IMG/VR virus record: IMGVR_UViG_3300035698_035366
Coordinates: 124,001 to 188,000 of that record
Length of the DNA: 64,000 nucleotides
Direction: 5' to 3' (one strand)
The notes under the pieces were generated by a model that saw only the letters and a list, made by a program, of their open reading frames with translations, was not told the origin of the DNA and made no database searches. The first letter of the stretch is position 1. The number at the start of each line of letters is the position of its first letter. This document shows positions 2 through 20,808 of the stretch, one piece after another. Made by a program: the position numbers and the translations under genes.

Positions 2-1426
2 CACCGCTTTGAAACAAGAGATGCACAAACAGAACAAGATTTTGGTGGACGACCAAAACCAAAATTCCTGTTTGGTGTGCGATTCATAACTCAGTTCAAT
101 TCACCGGCCTTTGGACAATTTTCTGACCAAAATGGCGACGTCGCTTTTATGGTTAAAACTGTTGATAAACCAAAAATTGATTTTGACGTCACAGTTATGA
201 ATCAATATAATAAGCGTAGATTAGTTCAAACAAAAATAAAATATCAACCAATTAATATGCGTTTTTATGATTCAGTAGATGAAAGACTATCAAAATTTAT
301 ATTATCATACATGCAGCATTACTATGGTGATCATTTAGCAGAAAATGTTGATCAATGGAGTTATGATAAAATTTCTTCAGAATTCAATAATGGTGTAGAT
401 GGTTGGGGTTACAGAGGTATTTCCCAACCAGGCCGCTCAAATTCTGCCCCTTTCATGTCACATATTGAACTTTATCAATTCTTTGGTGGTAATTTTTCTC
501 GTTGGGTTTTTGTTAACCCATTGATTACTAGCTTTGATCATGATAATGTTGATGCAGAATCGGGCAATGTTGCACAAGAAGCAAGTATGTCAGTCGAATT
601 TGAAGGACTTCTTTATAGAGAAAAAAATATCCCATTAGCAACATCTAAAGTTGGTCGCGCAGCAATTGATTTCTTCAAGCTAGAAGAGTTCGCTGATAAT
701 TTAGAATTACCTGATGCACTACAAATCGGCGGTTTAAATCTCGGTGGTATTAGTGATCTTGCATCGGCTAGATCAGTTTTTGGTCGAGAACTTGGTAGGA
801 AAACAATCGAAGTTTTGAGCGGTAGCCCAATCGATACATCAGGCATTTCTAGAACATCATCATCGGCATTAACACCGTTTGGTAACTTTGATTTTGGTTC
901 AGTTATTGTTGGTGAAGGTGTTGATGGATTAATTAGTAGCGGTGTAAGTGGATCGACAGGTGCGGTTTCAAACGCCATTAGAGCTGGTACTGCAAACGTT
1001 GCACGTGATGCTCTTAACTTGGTTAGAGGTAATATTCTTGGAACAGGTGGTACTCGACTCAATGACGGCGCTGCCTCGTTTTGTGCTGACCCAGCAACAG
1101 GATCTGGGACTTCACCGTCCGCATCCCCGGCAGGTGCCGCCAAAGCTGTTGGTCAAACAGGTGGGTTTTCCACACCAGGAGTAGCAGCAGATGAAAATTC
1201 AGCAGTTGTACAGTTTGCAGGAGCGGTGACAACTGGTGTTGATACAGTGGTCAAAGGGGTTGGTGATGGTTTACAGTTTGGATTAGAGACCATCGGGCTT
1301 AGAAATTCCCAATCTACTACAGGAAACCAAATTGGAGTAACAGCTAAACCATTTGTTGACCCAGATTCATTAACGCCTTCACAACGGGCTATTCGGGCAC
1401 AAAACCAATTTCCGGATAACACCTGA
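2..1426 (+). CDS. Tail tube/baseplate (T4 gp19/gp48/gp54-like) protein with long Gly/Ala/Ser/Thr-rich C-terminal extension; 5' end runs off the window
   Basis: Frame is open from position 2 (…RPKPKFLFGVRF…), upstream of the ORF-track start at 77. Motifs VKTVDKPKIDFDVTVMNQYN, YQPINMRFYD and ITSFDHD…SVEFE are typical of tube-fold proteins. Confidence 0.6.
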   Translation, partial: HRFETRDAQTEQDFGGRPKPKFLFGVRFITQFNSPAFGQFSDQNGDVAFMVKTVDKPKIDFDVTVMNQYNKRRLVQTKIKYQPINMRFYDSVDERLSKFILSYMQHYYGDHLAENVDQWSYDKISSEFNNGVDGWGYRGISQPGRSNSAPFMSHIELYQFFGGNFSRWVFVNPLITSFDHDNVDAESGNVAQEASMSVEFEGLLYREKNIPLATSKVGRAAIDFFKLEEFADNLELPDALQIGGLNLGGISDLASARSVFGRELGRKTIEVLSGSPIDTSGISRTSSSALTPFGNFDFGSVIVGEGVDGLISSGVSGSTGAVSNAIRAGTANVARDALNLVRGNILGTGGTRLNDGAASFCADPATGSGTSPSASPAGAAKAVGQTGGFSTPGVAADENSAVVQFAGAVTTGVDTVVKGVGDGLQFGLETIGLRNSQSTTGNQIGVTAKPFVDPDSLTPSQRAIRAQNQFPDNT

Positions 1427-1857
1427 TGGCTAAGTATGGTCATGTGCATAGTGGTGAATTTACGCCCAGCAATCCGGCAAAATATAAAGGTTCATATCCA
1501 ATAACATATAGAAGTTCATGGGAACTCACTGTATTCAACATGTTTGATTCGCACCCCAACGTTTTAGAATGGGCAAGTGAAAGCATAAAAATACCTTATA
1601 TGCACCCATTTAAGGGTAGAATGTCATTTTATATCCCAGACATTGTTGCAAAATTCGTGGATAAAAAAGGAAAAACTCATGTTGAGGTTATCGAGATAAA
1701 GCCTTTGAAAGAAACTTTGGCAGAACATGCCAAATCCAGGTATGATCAAGCACAATTAGCGGTTAATCATGCTAAATGGAAATCGGCTCAAGCTTATTGT
1801 GCAAAAGTCGGTATGAAATTTAGGATTTTAACCGAAAAACAAATATATAGAAATTAG
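1426..1857 (+). CDS. Head completion nuclease, T4 gp4-like (TnsA-type PD-(D/E)xK)
   Basis: G-x-F-x-P-x-N-P-x-K-Y, YRSSWE, WASE…IPY, YIPD and IEIKP motifs. Confidence 0.85.
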   Translation: MAKYGHVHSGEFTPSNPAKYKGSYPITYRSSWELTVFNMFDSHPNVLEWASESIKIPYMHPFKGRMSFYIPDIVAKFVDKKGKTHVEVIEIKPLKETLAEHAKSRYDQAQLAVNHAKWKSAQAYCAKVGMKFRILTEKQIYRN

Positions 1858-1954: not shown

Positions 1955-2542
1955 ATGCCTAAACAGCAAAAAACAAAACTTGAAGAAACCTTGGATTTGC
2001 CCAGTTTATCTGACGCATTAGAAGAATCAAAAGTGTCAAAAGAAAAAGAAGCACTCGATGCTGAAGAAAAAGAAGTGGATGAATTGGAAGAAACAATGAA
2101 AGAACTTTCAGCAACCAATCCACAGTCTGCTTCAGATTTTAAAAATGCATTGGATTCAGCAGCTGAATTAGAAAACACTGTCGCTAGGCATGCTGATTTC
2201 AAAGAACATGATGATGAAATGAATGAAGTTTCTGCACACGCAATGGAAAGTTATGAAATGCTAATGGATTTTGGAATGAACTGTACACCAGCTCATGCCG
2301 GATCAATATTTGATACCGCCGCCACTATGTTAAAGATTTCCCTTGATGCTCGAAATTCTAAATCAGATAAAAAATTAAAAGTTTGGCGTTTACAAATTGA
2401 ACAAGCCAGATTGATGCGTGATATGGAAAAACAGCGAGATGATAGTGGTGAAATTATTGATAATAACAATAACCAAATTAAAGGTTCTAGAAATGCGATT
2501 ATTGAGGGAATCAAATCTGGTAAGATCAGCTTGGACGATTAA
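1955..2542 (+). CDS. Acidic helical hypothetical protein; possible small terminase subunit
   Basis: ATG at 1955 follows a GAGGAG RBS (1942-1947), so the ORF-track start at 1868 is probably too far upstream. The function guess is positional only. Confidence 0.5.
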   Translation: MPKQQKTKLEETLDLPSLSDALEESKVSKEKEALDAEEKEVDELEETMKELSATNPQSASDFKNALDSAAELENTVARHADFKEHDDEMNEVSAHAMESYEMLMDFGMNCTPAHAGSIFDTAATMLKISLDARNSKSDKKLKVWRLQIEQARLMRDMEKQRDDSGEIIDNNNNQIKGSRNAIIEGIKSGKISLDD

Positions 2543-2597
2543 AAACAATCAACCAGCTAAATATAAAGAAATACAATTCTTTTAAAGGCTTTGGAAT

Positions 2598-3425
2598 ATG
2601 AAAAAAACATTTATTGAACATTTGATAGAGAGCGATCGGGAATACAGCTACCGAATTAAATCGGTTGTTGATTTTGACGATACCCAAATGGAGAAATTGG
2701 AGAGATTGGTTCAAAAATATGAACTACGTGATATGGAATCTCCAAGAAAGACTATTATTCAAGATCATCCACTTGATTTCCCAGATGTGAACCATGCAGA
2801 AGTTTATATTATTGATATTGTCACTGGTGTACCAGTATCATCATATATATTACAACAAGAAATCCGAGAGAATTTGAAAGTACCGGAAAAGTTTATTGTT
2901 GTTCGTTCTGAGAATGATCCTCTAGAGATTGAAACAGAAAAAATGCTTGCAATGAAAGATATGCGTGATGAAGCTGAAAAGAAAGGCCTTGAACGAGATG
3001 CATTACTTTCAACTTCAAGTGTTTATGTTGAAGATGAAAACTCAGTTCCTGGTGAAGAAATGTATGGGGATATATATAATAAGAGATTTCTAGATACTCT
3101 TGCCCAAATATCAGCAACTCGTTCCCCAGAATTCATTGAAAACAAAGGCACGGGGATTTTCTCGTGGTTGAACAATGAAGTTGACGATGTTCCTGAAATT
3201 ATGACAGACGATAGTTTCAACAGTGGTAAAGAATACGAATATGCTCCAAAACCAACACCGTGGTGGAAAGCTTCCAGCGTTGATCACAGGTTACATGATG
3301 ATTTAAGTTTGGGAACAGCCGGAAACTTTGATGACGATTCAAAATTATATCATCAAAAATATAAAAAGATTGATGGAGAAGAAGTCCATATGATCCGTAA
3401 AACAGAGGGAATTCAAGATGACTAA
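2598..3425 (+). CDS. Hypothetical late/virion protein
   Basis: 275-aa ORF after GCTAAATA (2556). N-terminus MKKTFIEHLIES resembles the E-site leaders of the other head proteins. Confidence 0.6.
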   Translation: MKKTFIEHLIESDREYSYRIKSVVDFDDTQMEKLERLVQKYELRDMESPRKTIIQDHPLDFPDVNHAEVYIIDIVTGVPVSSYILQQEIRENLKVPEKFIVVRSENDPLEIETEKMLAMKDMRDEAEKKGLERDALLSTSSVYVEDENSVPGEEMYGDIYNKRFLDTLAQISATRSPEFIENKGTGIFSWLNNEVDDVPEIMTDDSFNSGKEYEYAPKPTPWWKASSVDHRLHDDLSLGTAGNFDDDSKLYHQKYKKIDGEEVHMIRKTEGIQDD

Positions 3426-5472
3426 CGAATTGGATAGAATGATTAAACTAGCGGGCATTCGTCTTGCAGAAGATAATATGACCACTGACGGATTTGATTT
3501 CTCAGGAATTTCAAAACTCGTTGATGAAAATAAAATCAATACATTACCATATGGTGATCAAAAAGAAATTTTTAGACTGTCAAGTATGATTGGTGATGGT
3601 GGTATCCATGATGCAGTTTCCAGAGCGAAGGCGATGATACAGAAAGATCCATCGATGAGTTCAACTATGCAGAGTATATTACAAGACCTAATTTCAAATA
3701 GTGGTGTCAGTGATGTACAGGAAAATCTTAGTCCAATCCATGGTTCTCCTGAGAATCCAGATGAGGATCTTTATCCAGATCAGGAAGTTCACCAACATGA
3801 TCACGATTGGAACAATAACGATTCGTCCGAAGCAACAGATGATGATGGGCATCTAGTAGAAGATGAAGGTTCGTTAACATTTAAACTTTCAAGAAAGAAA
3901 ACTGAAGACGGGGAATTTGTAGTTAAAGCATACAAAAATGGCAAATATTATGAGCCAGCAAGCTACTATACAGATGATTGGGAAGATGCAGTTGGAACTA
4001 AAGCTGATATGGAGAAACGTGAAGGCATCAAGGAAGATGGTGACATGGGCGAAGCGCGTGAATTACCAGATGCAGTTAAAAATAATTTTGAATATGATCC
4101 AGATGCAGAAGCAACCGAAATTAGCTTTGATACAGAAGAACCTATTTCGGAAGAAAATACAACAGAAGGTGTTGTCAAACTAATATCAATGCTAGACGGT
4201 GATAGAAAAACTGCTAAAGAAATTGTAAAGCAATTGGATGAATGGGTTAACTTTGCTGGTGAAGATTGGTCTTCTGATGATTTTGTTGATGAACTCATGA
4301 ATGCATTTCCTGACCTAAGTGAAGAGATGGCTACTGAAATTCTTGAAATGCATGAAATGGGTGAAATTGGCGTCTCGGCATCATCATATAATGAATTTGG
4401 TGAATCAATCAAAGAAGACGTTCGTCAAGACGTTCCTGTTCTTGAATTCGATTCAACAGGTGATGCTTATGATGCGTGCCAGTATGATGACAATATAAAG
4501 AATGGTGATGTACTTTTAATTCCATCCGAAGGTGTGGTTGGAATAGCTGGTACGTGGCCCGTGGCAGTCACAATAGAAAATGGTAATCTCCATTCAGCAA
4601 AGGATGGTGAGTTATCACTTTACTTGGATGAACAAAATATGGGAGCCGGATTAGATAAAGCTGTTGCAACTGCAAATGATCACGGCTTTGAAATTGTTCC
4701 TGAAATGGCACAAGAAATAACTGAAGGATTTATGGATGATCTTCGTTCAGCAGCCAGTGATTTAGAAGGTGAGCTTGTTGTTATGCGTGAAACCCCAGAT
4801 GAAAGCGAATATGGTGCGGTAGAGGCCTTGGTTCGGGATATGGCACAAGCATATCATGTCGATGAAGATAGTTTATCTAGAACATTTGAAGATGTTTATG
4901 GTGTACATCCAGAAGAATATATGATGCAAACCGAATCGATGAACGAAATTAATGAAGATTGGGGCTCATCAGATTGGTATCCAATCATACAAAATATCGA
5001 TCAGGCAATTGAAAGAGACGGTGTATCACCTGAATCTATTGAAAATGCGGCACGCGATAGTGCAGAAATGTATTACGACCACATGGGATATGAATCAGTA
5101 GATGATGCAGTAGATCCAATTATCAATGGTTGGATGCGCATGTCAAAGAAAGGTAAACAGCTTTCTGCTATGTTCGCACCAAAAGAGACTATGGATGAAC
5201 ATGAAAACGGTGAATACGATTTTGGTCACCGTCAGATGGGTTACAAAGATTATCAACAGGATGTTTTTGATTATAGAGGACGAGCAGAAACTTCTGGCTC
5301 CAAACTTCGAGTTGTTAATAATTATGGCGATAACCCAATGATTGAAGAAGACCCTAGAAATGATAATGGTATTCGTGGAAAGCGGTTTTATGAAAATCAA
5401 GATCCTATTGCTGTTCGTGAAGCTCAATATGCTAAAGAATTCCGAGCGTTTTTAAAAGAAGGAAAGAAATAA
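3418..5472 (+). CDS. Very acidic multi-module protein, putative internal head polyprotein
   Basis: 684 aa, D/E-rich, many (I/L/V/M)-x-E sites (LAE, LVE, IKE, ITE, INE, LKE), RMIKLAGI N-terminal motif. Confidence 0.6.
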   Translation: MTNELDRMIKLAGIRLAEDNMTTDGFDFSGISKLVDENKINTLPYGDQKEIFRLSSMIGDGGIHDAVSRAKAMIQKDPSMSSTMQSILQDLISNSGVSDVQENLSPIHGSPENPDEDLYPDQEVHQHDHDWNNNDSSEATDDDGHLVEDEGSLTFKLSRKKTEDGEFVVKAYKNGKYYEPASYYTDDWEDAVGTKADMEKREGIKEDGDMGEARELPDAVKNNFEYDPDAEATEISFDTEEPISEENTTEGVVKLISMLDGDRKTAKEIVKQLDEWVNFAGEDWSSDDFVDELMNAFPDLSEEMATEILEMHEMGEIGVSASSYNEFGESIKEDVRQDVPVLEFDSTGDAYDACQYDDNIKNGDVLLIPSEGVVGIAGTWPVAVTIENGNLHSAKDGELSLYLDEQNMGAGLDKAVATANDHGFEIVPEMAQEITEGFMDDLRSAASDLEGELVVMRETPDESEYGAVEALVRDMAQAYHVDEDSLSRTFEDVYGVHPEEYMMQTESMNEINEDWGSSDWYPIIQNIDQAIERDGVSPESIENAARDSAEMYYDHMGYESVDDAVDPIINGWMRMSKKGKQLSAMFAPKETMDEHENGEYDFGHRQMGYKDYQQDVFDYRGRAETSGSKLRVVNNYGDNPMIEEDPRNDNGIRGKRFYENQDPIAVREAQYAKEFRAFLKEGKK

Positions 5473-15445: not shown

Positions 15446-16049
15446 AAATAATAAGAACAAACTTGTGACGCTTAGAATAAGCAGGTCAGTTGACCCGTTC
15501 GAACAAAAGAATTTTCGATACATTAATCGCCAACTTCATATGACTGTAGGTGTAACTTCACCTACAAGCAAGCCGGAAGAATGGATTGAAGTTGAATCAT
15601 TCGAAGATGCTGAGCGCCAAGCTGTAAGGCTTATGGTTGATTTGGAGCCAGATTTTGAAATCAATCTCAATTCACGTCGAGCAAGAGATGTTCTTGCGGC
15701 AATGGGAAACCGTGTCGCAACCCTGTCTACTCGAGGCAATGCAACCAATTATATTGTGCATCCCAATCATGAAGAAACGCTTCATAGCCTTCTAAAAAGT
15801 TCTAACCGCGCATCAGTTTATGCAAACAAATATTGTCCAGAAGATAAAATGATGGTAGTTTTCAAAAATGCGCTACCTACAATGGCTATCGACGGGGCTT
15901 TTCATTATCTGTATGACAATGAGAGTGGCAAGCATTGGTTATGCACGGTGAAGGGGAAACCTACTGATATTACCTGGAAGCATTATATTTCTGTTGCTCA
16001 TATCGTTAACGGAACTGATTCCGATGAAGAGGATGAATCTTTTGACTAA
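15411..16049 (+). CDS. Hypothetical protein with a segment resembling the gp23-type capsid protein
   Basis: MGNRVATLSTRGNATNYIVHP resembles the capsid ANxIAxxTRRGxGNxxxxSP motif. RBS AGGAGA. Confidence 0.5.
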   Translation: MDQLQTMSFLSRNNKNKLVTLRISRSVDPFEQKNFRYINRQLHMTVGVTSPTSKPEEWIEVESFEDAERQAVRLMVDLEPDFEINLNSRRARDVLAAMGNRVATLSTRGNATNYIVHPNHEETLHSLLKSSNRASVYANKYCPEDKMMVVFKNALPTMAIDGAFHYLYDNESGKHWLCTVKGKPTDITWKHYISVAHIVNGTDSDEEDESFD

Positions 16050-16425
16050 ACCTAGATTTAAATTCGGCCCAATCCCCGAGGGTTATCACATGATTGACCC
16101 AAACGTTTATCTCCCTATGGATGAAAACGAAACGGTTTGGGAGAGCCTGTTGGGTTTTGAATTTGGTGGTGACGTCCGATGGAAGCTATCGAAGATCCAT
16201 GTCTATGAAAATGGATACAGATTCTCAAAGAGTATAAAGATATTGTATTTCGAGGATGAAGCTGATTTGGTCATGCTTAGGCTTATGCTTGACCGAAACG
16301 AACATAAGTCCGAACGGGTTTTTACTCTAGATGAACACGAGAAGATGAAGAAGATTCGGGATATAGCGATCGCCCGTGGTCGTATTAAGAATGCAAATAA
16401 TCCTGATTCGAATTCTATTTTTTAA
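16033..16425 (+). CDS. Small protein, FxxxxDAxLFKL-motif family (divergent)
   Basis: Contains ILYFEDEADLVMLRLML. Probable ATG at 16033. Confidence 0.55.
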   Translation: MNLLTKPRFKFGPIPEGYHMIDPNVYLPMDENETVWESLLGFEFGGDVRWKLSKIHVYENGYRFSKSIKILYFEDEADLVMLRLMLDRNEHKSERVFTLDEHEKMKKIRDIAIARGRIKNANNPDSNSIF

Positions 16426-16447
16426 AAGTCTGAAGATATAATAAGAA

Positions 16448-16474
16448 AGATGGGCCCGAAAGGGCTTATTTTTT
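16448..16474 (+). terminator. Intrinsic terminator
   Basis: GGGCCC-GAAA-GGGCTT followed by ATTTTTT. Confidence 0.75.
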
Positions 16475-16642
16475 GACTAAAATTCCAAGTAATACCAAAT
16501 AATTATTAAATTGCTGTATCCTAGTAATAAATAAAGTATATTATAAACTACCCTAATTATTGAATTAATTACTTTAAATTTGACAAGAGTAATAGTATTC
16601 GTGTTATTATTTCCTAATAATAAATTAATAAAGGAAATAATA

Positions 16643-17089
16643 ATGAATATAGAATGTAATAAAGTATTTGAATTTAGTTTAGAAAATATACAATTCGCAT
16701 ATCTTAGTCGGGAAGAAGTATTTAATATATTGTCCGATGGTCGAGTATCAAGTCATTTTTTAGAAAAATTACTTGAAAAATGGTTCCCGGAACTTGTACA
16801 TGTTGATAAAAAAGGATATGACCATATAGATTCTTTTAATTTTAAATACGACCAAAAATGTTTCACATTTAATGGTTTGAAGTTTATGCCAAGTAATCAG
16901 ATTGGTCAAGGTAGAAAATTTGATATAGAAAAATCACACATACATGCCCAAGAAATAACTTATATATGCTGTAGTGTATATGATTTGCCAACCGTTCGTG
17001 TTATTTTCAAAAAAGGTCGAGATTTAGTTAGAGATTTCCCTCAATGTCAAATTAAGTTCAATGACCGATCCTATTTGTTTAATAACTAA
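16643..17089 (+). CDS. Putative restriction endonuclease (PD-(D/E)xK-like)
   Basis: DGRVSSHFLE, YDH…YDQK and PSNQIGQGRK motifs; adjacent to an MTase; very AT-rich. ATG 16643 follows AAGGA. Confidence 0.5.
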   Translation: MNIECNKVFEFSLENIQFAYLSREEVFNILSDGRVSSHFLEKLLEKWFPELVHVDKKGYDHIDSFNFKYDQKCFTFNGLKFMPSNQIGQGRKFDIEKSHIHAQEITYICCSVYDLPTVRVIFKKGRDLVRDFPQCQIKFNDRSYLFNN

Positions 17090-17115
17090 ATATACAAAAA
17101 TAAAGGGAGCAATAT

Positions 17116-17919
17116 TTGCATATGACGTCAAGAGATTTAGATCAATTTTATACGAAAGAATCAATTTCTTTGGAATTGTACAATATATCTAAAAACTATA
17201 TTACCGATTTTAATGATTACGATATTATATTGGAACCGTCGGCCGGATCAGGATCTTTTTTCAAATTATTTCCTGAAAAACAAAGACTTGGTTTAGATAT
17301 CGAGCCAAAATTCAACGATATAGTTAAACAAGATTTCTTTGAGTTTAAACCAAATCCATTTTTAAGTTATATAACAATTGGAAATCCTCCATTTGGTAAA
17401 AATGCAAGTTTAGCAATTAAATTTTTTAATAAATGTTCTGAATTTTCTAATTATATATGTTTTGTGGTCCCTAAAACATTTCGTAAAGTTTCGTTACATA
17501 ATAAATTAAGTTTAAACATGCATCTTATATATGATAAGGAATTGCCGGAGAATTCATTTATATTTAATGATAATCCATATAATGTACCATGCTGTTTCCA
17601 AATTTGGCAGAAAGCTACAACGAAACGGAAAATTATCCCCCCTATTTCTTATCATACCGATTTTGAGAGGGTTGATGATGTTTCCCTAGCAGATTTTATT
17701 TTTCAGCGCGTTGGCGCGCGCGCTGGAACATTAAAAACAGACAATCTTCTAAAATGGGGGAAAACTAGTCATTATTATATCCGCTCAAAGATTGATAAAC
17801 AACTTATTATTTCTAGATTCAACGAATTAAACTTCGATGAAGTTAAATATAATACTGCTGGAAATCCAAGCATCTCATATTCTGAAATCATACGTTTATA
17901 TACAGATAGATATACTTAA
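17116..17919 (+). CDS. DNA adenine (amino) methyltransferase
   Basis: DQFYT, motif I EPSAGSGSF, motif IV GNPPFG. Confidence 0.9.
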   Translation: MHMTSRDLDQFYTKESISLELYNISKNYITDFNDYDIILEPSAGSGSFFKLFPEKQRLGLDIEPKFNDIVKQDFFEFKPNPFLSYITIGNPPFGKNASLAIKFFNKCSEFSNYICFVVPKTFRKVSLHNKLSLNMHLIYDKELPENSFIFNDNPYNVPCCFQIWQKATTKRKIIPPISYHTDFERVDDVSLADFIFQRVGARAGTLKTDNLLKWGKTSHYYIRSKIDKQLIISRFNELNFDEVKYNTAGNPSISYSEIIRLYTDRYT

Positions 17920-18033
17920 ATTATTAATCAGCGCAGGTAATACCAAGTACTCGTTAAATTATATTGAAACCATTACTTGTTTTATACTATAGTAAATATA
18001 GTAATAATAATAACAAGGCTAATAAACAAAGTA

Positions 18034-19062
18034 ATGGCAAAAGACCAATGCACACTAGTAATTGAAGATGAAGTCAACATTAAGTTCAACAATTTAGATC
18101 CAGCAACAAGGCGGAAAGTTGTAACAGAACTAAAATTCTTTGTCCCTTATGCACGTCACACACCAAGCTTCAAGCTTGGTAGATGGGATGGCACTATAAG
18201 CTTAGCCACAACAGGTGGTCGTACTTTCTTCAACCTTCTTGACCGTGTCCTTCCCATAATTATGGATGAAGGTTATGAAATTAAAATTGAGGATCAGCGG
18301 GCTAGTCTTGAACTAGAATTTCCAAAGGCAACGGTTGATATGTTCTCCGATACATTATGGCCAAAAGGTCATATGAATGAGGGAGAACCAATCATTCTAC
18401 GGGATTACCAAGCAGATGTTATTGATGCGTTCTTGCGCAACCCACAGAGTTTACAAGAGATTGCCACCGGCTCCGGTAAGACGATCATAACGGCGGCTCT
18501 TTCAAAACTTTGTGAACCATATGGAAGAACAATTGTTGTTGTCCCAAATAAGGATCTAGTCACACAGACAGAAGCTGATTATATCAACCTTGGACTTGAT
18601 GTTGGTGTATTTTTTGGTGACAGAAAAGAATGGAATAAAACTCATACTATTTGTACATGGCAATCATTGTCGGTTCTTGATAAAAAATCTAAAAATAAAT
18701 TGGCCCTAACCGATGAAGAACTAAACGATTTCCTCAACAATGTTCAAACTATTATTGTTGATGAATGTTTTCACGGGGATTCGTTGGTATTAACCCCAAA
18801 TGGATATATACCTATAAAAGATATTAAATCGGGAGATATTGTTGTTAATTATGATGAAAAAGAGAAATTATTCAAAAACGATGTTGTTAAACAAATATAT
18901 GAAAATTTAACAAATTCATCTAAGGAAGAAATGCTTGAACTTGTATTTGATAATGGTAAAATAATTAAAGTTACAGCTAATCACAAATTCCTAACAAATA
19001 AAGGCTGGATTAGGGCCGATGAATTAAATGAACATCTAACCATTATTGACATAAATACATAA
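18034..19062 (+). CDS. uvsW: UvsW-like SF2 helicase N-terminal half fused to split-intein N fragment
   Basis: LRDYQ Q-motif and IATGSGKT Walker A. The protein ends IIVDE followed by CFHGD…TANH…, an intein N domain. Confidence 0.9.
   Translation: MAKDQCTLVIEDEVNIKFNNLDPATRRKVVTELKFFVPYARHTPSFKLGRWDGTISLATTGGRTFFNLLDRVLPIIMDEGYEIKIEDQRASLELEFPKATVDMFSDTLWPKGHMNEGEPIILRDYQADVIDAFLRNPQSLQEIATGSGKTIITAALSKLCEPYGRTIVVVPNKDLVTQTEADYINLGLDVGVFFGDRKEWNKTHTICTWQSLSVLDKKSKNKLALTDEELNDFLNNVQTIIVDECFHGDSLVLTPNGYIPIKDIKSGDIVVNYDEKEKLFKNDVVKQIYENLTNSSKEEMLELVFDNGKIIKVTANHKFLTNKGWIRADELNEHLTIIDINT
18766..19059 (+). mobile_element. Split intein N fragment (IntN, 98 aa)
   Basis: Block A CFHGDSLVLTPNG…IKDIKSGD and block B IKVTANHKF, then TAA at 19060-19062. 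Confidence 0.9.
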
Positions 19063-19081
19063 AGCTAAAGGAGATGTATTT

Positions 19082-19975
19082 ATGCCAAAAAAATTTAATA
19101 TAATCAGATTTAATCAATTATTAATGAAACATAATCAAATATTACAAGCCAAATATATCAACAAACAAATAATGCTTACTAATGGAGTTGAGATTATCAC
19201 AATTCCGGAAGTTAGAAAATGTAAACGTCGGGTAATGAATGAATCTATTGAATATATTACCAGATTTGATTTAATATATTCCGGTAATGAAAATTTAGCT
19301 AAAAACGCATTACATGAAGCAAAATCTAAATCAGCATCTGTTGGTGGTAAGAAATGTCAAGAAAAGCATGGTGATTTAATAAAGAAAAATCTTAACACTG
19401 GCATACCTTGGAACAAAGATACTCAAGGTAATTATCCATATTCATTTCCATGTACCAAACAAACCAGAGAAAAAATAAGTAAAGCTAATTCAGGAAAACA
19501 TAATGGAATGTATGGTAAGAAAATGTCAGAATTTGATAAGAGTTATCGAAGCGAACTAATGAAAAATAAAATCAAAAATGGTGAATTTACACCTAATAGT
19601 AATAATAGAAATACTCATTGGGATTCGCATTATGATGGTAATAAATATAGAAGCTCATGGGAAGCACTTTATCATGCTAGTGATCAGGCGGCAGAATATG
19701 AAACTCTTCGAATACCATACAATATAAATGGTGTTGAGCGAATTTATATAGTTGATTTTGTAAATCATTCTACTAAAAAGGCAATCGAAGTAAAACCAAA
19801 ATCACAATTACAAAATTGCTATGAGAAAATAGAAGCATTAAAAGAATGGTGTTATAATAATAATTATGAAATGATAATAGCTGATGAAGATTATCTTCAA
19901 AAAATAGATAAAACAAAAATTAATTTTTCGTTGTTTGATGAAAAAACATTAACTAAAATTGGTAATATTAGATGA
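19082..19975 (+). CDS. Free-standing homing endonuclease (NUMOD3-like DNA-binding segment + TnsA/gp4-like nuclease domain)
   Basis: TREKISKANSGKHNGMYGKK, then YRSSWEA…IPY…YIVDF…IEVKP. Own RBS AAAGGAG; different frame from the two intein halves. Confidence 0.8.
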   Translation: MPKKFNIIRFNQLLMKHNQILQAKYINKQIMLTNGVEIITIPEVRKCKRRVMNESIEYITRFDLIYSGNENLAKNALHEAKSKSASVGGKKCQEKHGDLIKKNLNTGIPWNKDTQGNYPYSFPCTKQTREKISKANSGKHNGMYGKKMSEFDKSYRSELMKNKIKNGEFTPNSNNRNTHWDSHYDGNKYRSSWEALYHASDQAAEYETLRIPYNINGVERIYIVDFVNHSTKKAIEVKPKSQLQNCYEKIEALKEWCYNNNYEMIIADEDYLQKIDKTKINFSLFDEKTLTKIGNIR

Positions 19976-20076
19976 AATTAGTTTCTACAAAAATTATTGA
20001 AAAACCAGAAACCGTATATAATTTAGAAATCGAAAATGATCATAATTATATTGTTGAAGGAGCAGTTGTTTCAAAT
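19972..20076 (+). mobile_element. Split intein C fragment (IntC, 35 aa)
   Basis: Block F VYNLEI…HNY and block G VSN followed by +1 Cys (20077-20079). Confidence 0.9.
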
Positions 20077-20808
20077 TGTCACATGGCAAAGGCTGATGTT
20101 CTAAAAGGTCTTCTAACATCTGCATTCAAGGATTGTCCAATTCGTTGGGGGTTAACCGGGACCATTCCAAAAGAAGATCACGAATTCCTTTCAATTCTTT
20201 CAAGTATTGGCCCAGTCGTTGGAAGCCTAGCAGCAAAAGATCTTCAAGACATGGGTGTTCTTTCAAACTGTCATGTTGAGATTTGTCAACTTCAAGATCA
20301 GCAAGTATTTGGTGATTATCATTCAGAGCAAAAATTCTTATCAGAAAACCCCAACCGTTTAGATTGGGTCTCAAAATTTGTTGAAAATATTTCTAAAGAT
20401 GGCAATTCTTTAATTCTTGTAAATAAGATAGCGACGGGTGAAGCGTTACAAGCAGCAATTCCAGATTCAGTGTTTATATCAGGCAAAGTCAAAAGCGTTG
20501 ATCGAAAAGACGAGTATGATGCAGTATCGTTGGAAGATGGTAAAGTAATCATTGCAACTTATGGAGTTGCAGCCGTTGGAATTAACATACCGCGTATCTT
20601 TAATTTGTTCTTGTTTGAGCCTGGCAAATCCTTTGTCCGGGTTATTCAAAGCATTGGTCGCGGACTACGTAAAGCAAAAGATAAGGATTATGTTCAAATT
20701 TATGATATAACATCTAGTTGTAAATTCAGTAAGAGACATTTAACAGCTAGAAAACGTTTTTATAAAGATGCTGGGTACCCTTTTCGTGTAACCAAAGTTA
20801 AAATATGA
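19972..20808 (+). CDS. uvsW: Split-intein C fragment fused to UvsW-like helicase C-terminal half
   Basis: MKLVS…VYNLEIENDHNYIVEGAVVSN|CH, then WGLTGT (motif III), IATYGVAAVGINIP (V) and QSIGRGLR (VI). Confidence 0.9.
   Translation: MKLVSTKIIEKPETVYNLEIENDHNYIVEGAVVSNCHMAKADVLKGLLTSAFKDCPIRWGLTGTIPKEDHEFLSILSSIGPVVGSLAAKDLQDMGVLSNCHVEICQLQDQQVFGDYHSEQKFLSENPNRLDWVSKFVENISKDGNSLILVNKIATGEALQAAIPDSVFISGKVKSVDRKDEYDAVSLEDGKVIIATYGVAAVGINIPRIFNLFLFEPGKSFVRVIQSIGRGLRKAKDKDYVQIYDITSSCKFSKRHLTARKRFYKDAGYPFRVTKVKI

Follow-up and report, generated by a model that had tools for sequence, protein, structure and literature searches.

A predicted split intein with its own TnsA-like endonuclease gene breaks a jumbo-phage UvsW-type helicase at the DExH box

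How does a phage come to carry a UvsW-type helicase of superfamily 2 (SF2) whose gene is broken inside the DExH box, and how would a working enzyme be made from the pieces? The question is raised by a 64,000-nt stretch of DNA (the window), which spans positions about 124001-188000 of a 296-kb IMG/VR contig. A preliminary description of the window had proposed that a natural split intein rejoins the halves. The open reading frame (ORF) list, the raw sequence and an intein hidden Markov model (HMM) bear out its account of gene 1, in which the helicase part ends IIVDE/CFHGD (a slash marks the insertion point throughout) and continues into a 98-aa N-terminal intein half (IntN). Its account of the other side gave the sequence correctly, a 35-aa C-terminal intein half (IntC) followed by CHMAK, but this lies in the third ORF and not the second, as an endonuclease ORF intervenes. 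We consider it very probable that the locus is a fractured gene, in which a class-1 intein at motif II (DE/CH) of a UvsW-type recombination and repair helicase from a 296-kb T4-core jumbo phage is broken by an endonuclease gene, and that its halves splice. The anatomy of the locus is observed directly, as are the intein-family membership of both halves and the existence of empty, mini-intein and split alleles at one codon.

Positions 18034-20808 are filled by three co-oriented ORFs, found in both the ORF list and the raw sequence, with the following features:

17964..17993, + strand: sigma-70-like promoter match TTGAAA-18-TATAGT upstream of gene 1 (10/12 matches), a weak lead
18034 (ATG) to 19060-19062 (TAA), + strand: gene 1, helicase N half of 244 aa plus IntN of 98 aa
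18034..18765, + strand: N-extein, UvsW-like SF2 helicase N half, 244 aa, with Walker A GSGKT and the D-E of motif II
18766..19062, + strand: IntN, 98 aa plus TAA stop, with Cys1 (block A CFHGD) and block B T-A-N-H
19067..19073, + strand: Shine-Dalgarno (SD) sequence AAAGGAG, 8 nt before the endonuclease ATG, read from the sequence
19082..19975, + strand: free-standing gene for a predicted homing endonuclease, 297 aa, in a frame different from both intein halves
19972-20808, + strand: gene 3, IntC of 35 aa plus helicase C half of 243 aa
19972..20076, + strand: IntC, 35 aa, with block F (VYNLEIENDHNY) and block G VVSN with the terminal Asn
20077..20808, + strand: C-extein, helicase C half, 243 aa plus stop, starting with the +1 Cys of DE/CH and containing the RecA2/Helicase_C domain

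At the first junction the helicase part of gene 1 closes with ...TIIVDE, and the intein part CFHGDSLVL...VTANHKF...IIDINT comes next. The endonuclease ORF begins 19 nt past the gene 1 stop, and the ATG of gene 3 (19972) shares the letters ATGA with the endonuclease stop. IntC reads MKLVSTK...VYNLEIENDHNYIVEGAVVSN and its C-terminal end is ...NDHNYIVEGAVVSN, after which the C-extein opens with CHMAKADVLK....

Both halves belong to known intein families. A comparison with intein HMMs had been suggested in the preliminary description, and in it both halves exceed the NCBIfam cut-offs: IntN scores 43.7 bits against intein_Nterm (TIGR01445; cut-off 24.5) over residues 245-321, starting at Cys245 of gene 1, and IntC scores 24.0 bits against intein_Cterm (TIGR01443; cut-off 15.6) over residues 15-36 of gene 3. 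IntN also matches the Pfam families Hint (33.0 bits; cut-off 29.7), PT-HINT (30.3; cut-off 27.7) and Intein_splicing. Its nearest solved relatives by sequence are the Npu and Ssp DnaB mini-inteins (E 1.5e-6), and IntC, which aligns with the 36-residue C-part of Npu DnaE, has its best sequence matches in the Protein Data Bank (PDB) among Npu DnaE intein chains, including the C-part chains 4lx3_B and 4qfq_B. The hallmarks of a class-1 intein are present on both sides, with Cys1 and block B VTANH upstream and the terminal Asn and +1 Cys (...VVSN/CH) downstream; neither the 13 split or mini members of the family nor the 12 contiguous ones vary at Cys1, at the Thr and His of block B, at the terminal Asn or at the +1 Cys.

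The fold was modelled on the contiguous homologue L008, which is 48% identical to IntN and 71% identical to IntC of the window, and not on the window's two chains. The AlphaFold2 (AF2) model of this mini-intein is a HINT domain, with a predicted local distance difference test (pLDDT) score of 93.7 and a predicted template modelling (pTM) score of 0.86. Foldseek aligns it with solved inteins at template modelling (TM) scores of 0.76-0.87 and probability 1.0 (Ssp DnaB 0.83, Npu DnaE 0.83, NrdJ-1 0.81, gp41-1 0.79), and its sequence is at most 27% identical to that of any solved intein. In the model the 98/35 split point falls in the loop between a strand ending at residue 83 and a strand starting at residue 96, so modelled, the break is at the canonical endonuclease-insertion loop, between the N-terminal blocks and block F. 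Curated HMMs, invariant residues, the HINT fold of this homologue, uninterrupted homologues and the presence of the same allele in independent genomes (see below) together uphold the proposal of a split intein in a UvsW-like helicase.

The host gene has the SF2 helicase core, with Pfam ResIII (2.6e-15) and DEAD (1.8e-10) on the N-extein and Helicase_C (5e-6) on the C-extein all over their cut-offs; the C-extein also matches phrog_9690 and phrog_16 of the PHROG database, both named 'DNA helicase'. The N-extein matches UvsW_N weakly, at 19.8 bits and thus under the Pfam cut-off of 25.3; the closest cultured relatives are annotated UvsW or 'RNA-DNA + DNA-DNA helicase', and gp32-like and UvsX/RecA-like genes lie in the neighbourhood. 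Uninterrupted jumbo-phage helicases are 45-61% identical to the N-extein, and relatives align from residue 1 of gene 1, in keeping with its start codon; for the C-extein, identity to uninterrupted relatives is 48-66%. The insertion is placed exactly at the DExH box, as had been claimed. Because the uninterrupted homologue of Vibrio phage 2.275.O reads straight through the junction (VIVDECHTAKGE), the insert stands precisely between the E and the x of the box, and about 45 uninterrupted relatives are collinear across DE/xH.

We scanned IMG/VR with gene 1 and sorted the 65 loci obtained by tblastn with five separate pieces. The site is empty in about 45 of the 65 loci and holds a split intein with an endonuclease in about 16, while two (L008 and L014) carry contiguous mini-inteins, in which IntN and IntC are fused in frame with neither a stop nor an endonuclease, within stop-free helicase stretches of 611 and 615 codons. 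A database search with the L008 intein region added ten contiguous alleles, 133-162 aa long and inserted at this very site, and more split N halves; overall, contiguous mini-intein alleles of 130-162 aa occur in at least 12 proteins. The same allele is present, unannotated, in the cultured Salmonella phages S16 (gp114, gp114.1 and gp115), STP4-a and their relatives and in Proteus phage PM2, whose records annotate the three ORFs as helicase, hypothetical protein and helicase; among 2,286 phage records with a homologue of the UvsW C half, the only carriers are those with an IntN match in uvsW, namely eight Salmonella S16-group records and, in addition, the Proteus PM2 records. The three pieces are already separate PHROG families. 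Of the 12 contiguous mini-inteins, 6 keep a Met exactly at the position of the IntC start codon in the split alleles, which would fit an origin of these mini-inteins from a split ancestor through loss of the endonuclease gene, the direction not being established.

The alleles also bear on the residue that the intein needs downstream. That the +1 Cys is the C of DECH had been read correctly from the sequence, but this Cys is not ancestral in the clade. All 13 occupied alleles that were scored read DE/CH, and the 47 empty ones comprise 44 DEVH, two DECH and one DGVH (at the empty DEVH-type site of L032 the DNA around the junction reads GTTGACGAA/GTACAT). The +1 Cys therefore accompanies the intein, and the C of DECH is, to judge from these alleles, not the ancestral helicase residue in the window's clade. 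T4-type UvsW is natively DECH, that of RB18 reading NDECH without an intein, and entry of the element into jumbo-phage helicases from DECH-type hosts would be compatible with this, again with the direction not established. The single DGVH allele belongs to L035, which around position 4711 has VDG/VH in place of VDE/VH in Walker B, the only such intein-free allele, and AKVD for AKAD nearby; either a dead helicase or several sequencing errors could account for this.

On the extein tree the presence of the intein takes nine changes or more, and well-supported branches force four of these. Exteins of the occupied locus L006 and the empty locus L032 are 95-96% identical in DNA, and their identity goes down to 88% in the 51-nt segments flanking the insertion, a dip that is expected from co-conversion. 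Between L012 and L057 the C-exteins are 98% identical in protein, whereas IntN is 77%, IntC 66% and the endonuclease 65% identical, and this mismatch between extein and cassette leads us to conclude that the cassette was replaced. Over larger distances, jumbo and T4-like phages have IntN sequences that agree at 55-67% of residues, although their helicase halves agree at only 22-26%; for the exteins of S16 and PM2 UvsW, identity to those of the window is 22-26%. The comparisons establish a patchy distribution, and an evident exchange of the cassette between otherwise near-identical helicases.

We propose that one transcript would give all three ORFs. The endonuclease would have a strong SD for itself, and translation of the C half would be coupled to termination at the endonuclease stop. 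IntN (98 aa) and IntC (35 aa) would then associate into the HINT fold; an N-S acyl shift at Cys1 would form a thioester, the +1 Cys would attack it and the terminal Asn would cyclise, the predicted product being a 487-aa helicase with an intact IIVDECH. Before splicing, the ATPase site would be divided and occupied by an intein of ~15 kDa, so that helicase activity should depend on splicing. In a co-infection the endonuclease would cut intein-free, mostly DEVH alleles, and their repair would bring in the cassette and, with it, the neighbouring TGY codon, the source of the obligatory +1 Cys.

All of this presupposes that the break is real. It might instead be an artefact or a decaying pseudogene, that is, a contiguous intein with a nested endonuclease broken by frameshifts, or a dead helicase gene, and the fact that the window comes from metagenome data only speaks for such caution. 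The locus, however, is identical over 9,026 nt, with zero differences, between contigs assembled independently from two different metagenomes, which answers the worry about an assembly error that the preliminary description itself had voiced. The three-ORF layout is kept in the 10 diverged loci that were examined in detail, with an endonuclease frame that differs from that of IntN in 10/10, an overlap of 4-41 nt between the IntC start and the endonuclease 3' end, and a strong SD before the endonuclease in most; L006, L012 and L057 share a near-identical SD (taaaggagaNgtatttATG) despite endonucleases that are only about 51% identical in protein. The same order of stop, SD and ATG and the same frame offset recur in the finished genomes of the cultured phages. 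The two identical assemblies and the layout in 10 diverged loci lead us to reject an assembly error or a frameshifted contiguous intein. A pseudogene is further opposed by intact helicase motifs and by the ratio of nonsynonymous to synonymous substitution rates (dN/dS), calculated for pairs with finite dS only, since dS is saturated in many pairs: it lies below 1 in every part where it is measurable (0.05-0.57, mostly < 0.3), IntN giving 0.05-0.20 and the endonuclease 0.07-0.25 in most pairs and 0.57 in a distant one. These ratios show that both halves of the intein, and the endonuclease too, are under purifying selection, and we find an artefact or pseudogene scarcely credible.

An intact element need not splice, and the intein halves might be splicing-dead and act as high-affinity docking domains through which the helicase assembles non-covalently. 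Endonuclease-split NrdA of phage Aeh1 is a reported precedent for non-covalent assembly (PMC3045599), and the window departs from the textbook intein at two accessory positions that are frequently but not obligatorily occupied, with Ser in place of the penultimate His and, at block F:4, Asn (VYNL) in place of the usual Asp. Both departures weigh against the splicing that we favour, as do the following findings. No convincing SD precedes the IntC ATG, and synthesis of the C half therefore rests on inferred translational coupling; the window pair (net charge -4 for IntN and -3 for IntC) lacks the opposite charges of fast natural split inteins; and phylogenetic correction of the link between Cys and intein leaves 4 well-supported independent pairs, all in one direction, for a sign-test p of 0.125. 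Opposite net charges of the halves are typical of fast natural split inteins, and the S16 and PM2 pairs have about -6 and +4; with both window halves net negative, fast electrostatic association is not to be assumed. The two departures are shared within the family: the Asn at F:4 occurs in all split and mini members aligned and in 11 of the 12 contiguous ones (P0143 alone has Asp), and the penultimate residue is Ser in four distinct sequences, Ala in five and His in two, so the Ser had been rightly noted but is ordinary here and not unusual. Npu DnaE ends ...ASN and Ssp DnaE ...AAN, both without the penultimate His. Against docking, 25 diverged sequences all keep Cys1, the His of block B, the terminal Asn and the +1 Cys; the Cys replaces Val precisely where the intein is present, although docking does not need a Cys; and the contiguous mini-inteins must splice, or else ~130 extra residues remain inside motif II. 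Because the +1 Cys strictly co-occurs with the intein and is useless for docking but obligatory for splicing, splicing itself appears to be under selection, and we regard docking as improbable. The selfish split intein that we prefer might in addition serve as a conditional switch, for instance with redox or timing control through the Cys1 and +1 Cys pair and the order of translation. The insertion in the catalytic Walker B, which means that activity must wait for splicing, and translation of the C half only after the endonuclease ORF would suit such a role, and a functional meaning has been argued for the clustering of inteins in ATPase motifs of replication proteins (PMC4760082). About 45 of 65 related phages nevertheless do without the intein, and patchy presence even among near-identical helicases is the signature of a parasite and not of a regulator, which makes a switch quite improbable. 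By its sequence, then, the element is a true split intein that is intact and comes with a dedicated endonuclease gene, and it is predicted to splice.

The endonuclease combines NUMOD3 in its N-terminal region (Pfam, 31.3 bits; cut-off 20.4) with a C-terminal TnsA-like PD-(D/E)xK nuclease domain (Tn7_TnsA-like_N, PF08722, 30.1 bits; cut-off 26.5), and matches phrog_22417 as well as phrog_15427, which bears the name 'endonuclease'. At E <= 1e-5 its homologues number 526, of which >100 are full-length at about 50% identity. In an alignment of 36 rows E194 (RSSWE), D225 (IVDF) and E236 are invariant and K238 (IEVK) nearly so; the predicted catalytic signature is thus the canonical E...D...ExK of PD-(D/E)xK nucleases. 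Searches of PDB sequences with the single sequence and with the 36-row profile gave no usable match, and the classification is therefore by Pfam and predicted structure. TnsA chains, 1t0f and 1f1z among them, are the top three PDB matches of the AF2 model (pLDDT 87), with probability 0.99-1.0, E 5e-3 to 2e-2 and TM scores of 0.28-0.32, which are low because only one domain aligns. Membership in the EDxHD or Vsr-like group, whose composite catalytic motif is defined in PMC3239194, was considered, given that two records of the Joint Genome Institute (JGI) name homologues 'very-short-patch-repair endonuclease' and that the family of Dassa et al. 2009 (PMC2677866) also has N-terminal NUMODs; it was rejected, there being no conserved D-x-H and no Vsr or I-Bth0305I match by profile or among the 50 fold matches listed. 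A GIY-YIG type was likewise set aside in favour of the NUMOD3 and TnsA-like PD-(D/E)xK assignment.

Relatives of this endonuclease occur in other settings. Its nuclease domain shares homology with 'head closure' proteins of the T4 gp4 type, and the window itself encodes one, a 143-aa protein at 1426-1857 (+ strand; phrog_218, E 4.6e-42). This protein and the endonuclease share YRSSWE...D...IEIKP nuclease-like motifs (tblastn E 0.002; phrog_15427 E 5e-8), a kinship that may hint at the origin of the endonuclease family. In Escherichia phage HY03 (NC_031047, L070; 1510-4362) and many Tequatrovirus records the gene for the terminase large subunit lies in two ORFs, broken at Walker B (...MIYIDE/CVAKDTKV...) with an N piece extended by only about 40 residues, and in HY03 a 199-aa homologue of the window's endonuclease stands between the terminase halves. 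The arrangement resembles the atypically split terminase intein with a long C-part mentioned by Dassa et al. That related endonucleases split HY03-like terminases supports a homing role for the family; homing by the window's endonuclease is predicted on indirect grounds, from patchy distribution, cassette exchange and these terminase-splitting relatives.

The locus has the makings of the fractured genes described by Dassa et al. (PMC2677866): an enzyme gene in two ORFs with intein halves, uninterrupted orthologues, and a separate endonuclease with its own SD. Their hosts are gp41, IMPDH, DnaE, NrdA, NrdJ, ligase and terminase, with gp41-1, gp41-8, NrdJ-1, IMPDH-1 and NrdA-2 among the named examples, and their endonucleases are GIY-YIG or Vsr-like/EDxHD. 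The window agrees with them in its break at the usual endonuclease-insertion point, in its overlapping frames and in part lengths within the published 88-105 aa (N) and 33-54 aa (C). It differs in the TnsA-like PD-(D/E)xK endonuclease and in the host, a UvsW-type SF2 helicase, which is not among the hosts named there and justifies the earlier description of a less usual host gene. By sequence, NrdJ-1 and DnaE match IntN of the window weakly (E 0.002 or worse) and gp41-1 does not match. In the jumbo phage MIJ3 a split PolB intein is accompanied by an HNH endonuclease, with a mini-intein allele in another jumbo phage (PMC6892783); this too is a fractured replication gene in a jumbo phage, but it is unlike the window in host gene, in its Ser1/Ser+1 intein and in endonuclease family.

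S16 (like STP4-a and others) and PM2 have this intein allele at the identical DE/CH codon of UvsW, and a homologue of the endonuclease separates the halves (identity to the window 55-57% for IntN, 49-54% for IntC and about 40% for the endonuclease), but they have T4-type UvsW exteins with a native Cys, a penultimate His and a positively charged IntC. The Npu and Ssp DnaE inteins are likewise naturally split at this loop, with parts of about 100 and 35-36 aa, and are of class 1 with Cys1 and Cys+1; Npu DnaE is 19% identical to L008 and has Asp at F:4 (VYDIGV), where the window's family has Asn. The DnaE intein halves lie far apart in the genome and are not known to have an endonuclease between them. 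The Ssp and Npu DnaB mini-inteins are the closest solved structures by sequence and fold and have the size of the contiguous alleles found here, but they are contiguous, sit at a different site in DnaB and are 24-26% identical. Like I-Ssp6803I, I-Bth0305I (EDxHD) and TnsA, the window's endonuclease is predicted to have a restriction-enzyme-like nuclease fold recruited for homing, and like I-Bth0305I it has a NUMOD DNA-binding region N-terminal to the nuclease domain; it is unlike I-Ssp6803I and I-Bth0305I in having the canonical E...D...ExK and no EDxHD, with TnsA the best fold match.

What is new is the host gene and the type of nuclease, the kind of selfish element being already known. A search of the literature that left most subscription journals outside its reach found no UvsW split intein and no TnsA-like intein-associated endonuclease, and nothing relevant to a split intein in work on S16 or Gelderlandvirus. 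The suggestion that the intein is possibly new holds in that sense, but the allele itself is already in the GenBank records of S16, STP4-a and PM2 and in PHROGs. A bolder proposal, which we find plausible while leaning slightly against it, is that the NUMOD3 and TnsA-like (gp4-related) protein is the prototype of an undescribed family of phage homing endonucleases that moves one intein allele between T4-like and jumbo phages and imposes a Val-to-Cys change in the DExH box of the helicase at each invasion, and that the intein family keeps every stage of the birth of a split intein, or of its reversal, together in nature: the empty DEVH site, the mini-intein, and the split intein with its endonuclease. 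If so, the origin of split inteins would be directly testable in cultured phage S16.

Natural split inteins are tools for protein ligation, and each new unrelated pair is possibly orthogonal to the others; this family supplies dozens of natural variants that differ in the penultimate residue (Ser, Ala or His) and in the charge of the C-part, and has contiguous counterparts for comparison. For the evolution of inteins it offers a single codon that is found empty, filled by a mini-intein or filled by a split intein, at times in helicases with 95% DNA identity, and a case in which the obligatory +1 Cys of the intein would rewrite a catalytic motif of the host from DEVH to DECH. Through the cultured carriers S16 and PM2, splicing, homing and fitness effects can be tested. 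For annotation, these phage triplets of the form 'DNA helicase / hypothetical / DNA helicase' should be recorded as one intein-split uvsW.

The source genome appears to have no close cultured relative, since megablast of window positions 1-25000 against 50,697 phage records gave zero matches. Scans of the region for promoters and terminators did no better than on shuffled sequence (25 promoter-like sites against 25.3 expected from shuffling), and we therefore make no claim about the transcription unit. The G+C content falls to 0.31 at window positions 16001-20000, which hold the element and its upstream neighbours, compared with 0.35-0.42 elsewhere. The ORF directly upstream of gene 1 (17116-17919) matches phrog_5172 and, weakly, a DNA methyltransferase family.

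Further insertions were seen among the relatives. In P0133, P0134 and P0142 the DE/C junction lies ~375 residues further in and a LAGLIDADG Pfam domain is present, probably reflecting an additional full-size intein upstream in the same helicase. The IMG/VR relatives L057-L060 have a second insertion in this helicase (about 2390-4000), at Walker A (...ATGAGK/CRTYDST...): the upstream ORF continues for ~400 aa and bears a Vsr/DUF559-like motif (..IIVEFHGSKFHAN..) at its C-terminus, and the next ORF has ~115 extra N-terminal residues, ending ...DADGVLHHN/TITTATL. Pfam gives no Hint domain in this stretch, which resembles an intein split in an atypical way, into a very short N-part and a long C-part. 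Finally, in Prevotella phage Lak-B2 (MK250021.1, L071; about 386,020-387,453) an IntN-like match (39%) adjoins an endonuclease-like one (35%), a pairing that points to a further fractured gene with this type of cassette in the Lak megaphages; under translation table 11 the region shows hardly any long ORFs, possibly because of stop codon reassignment.

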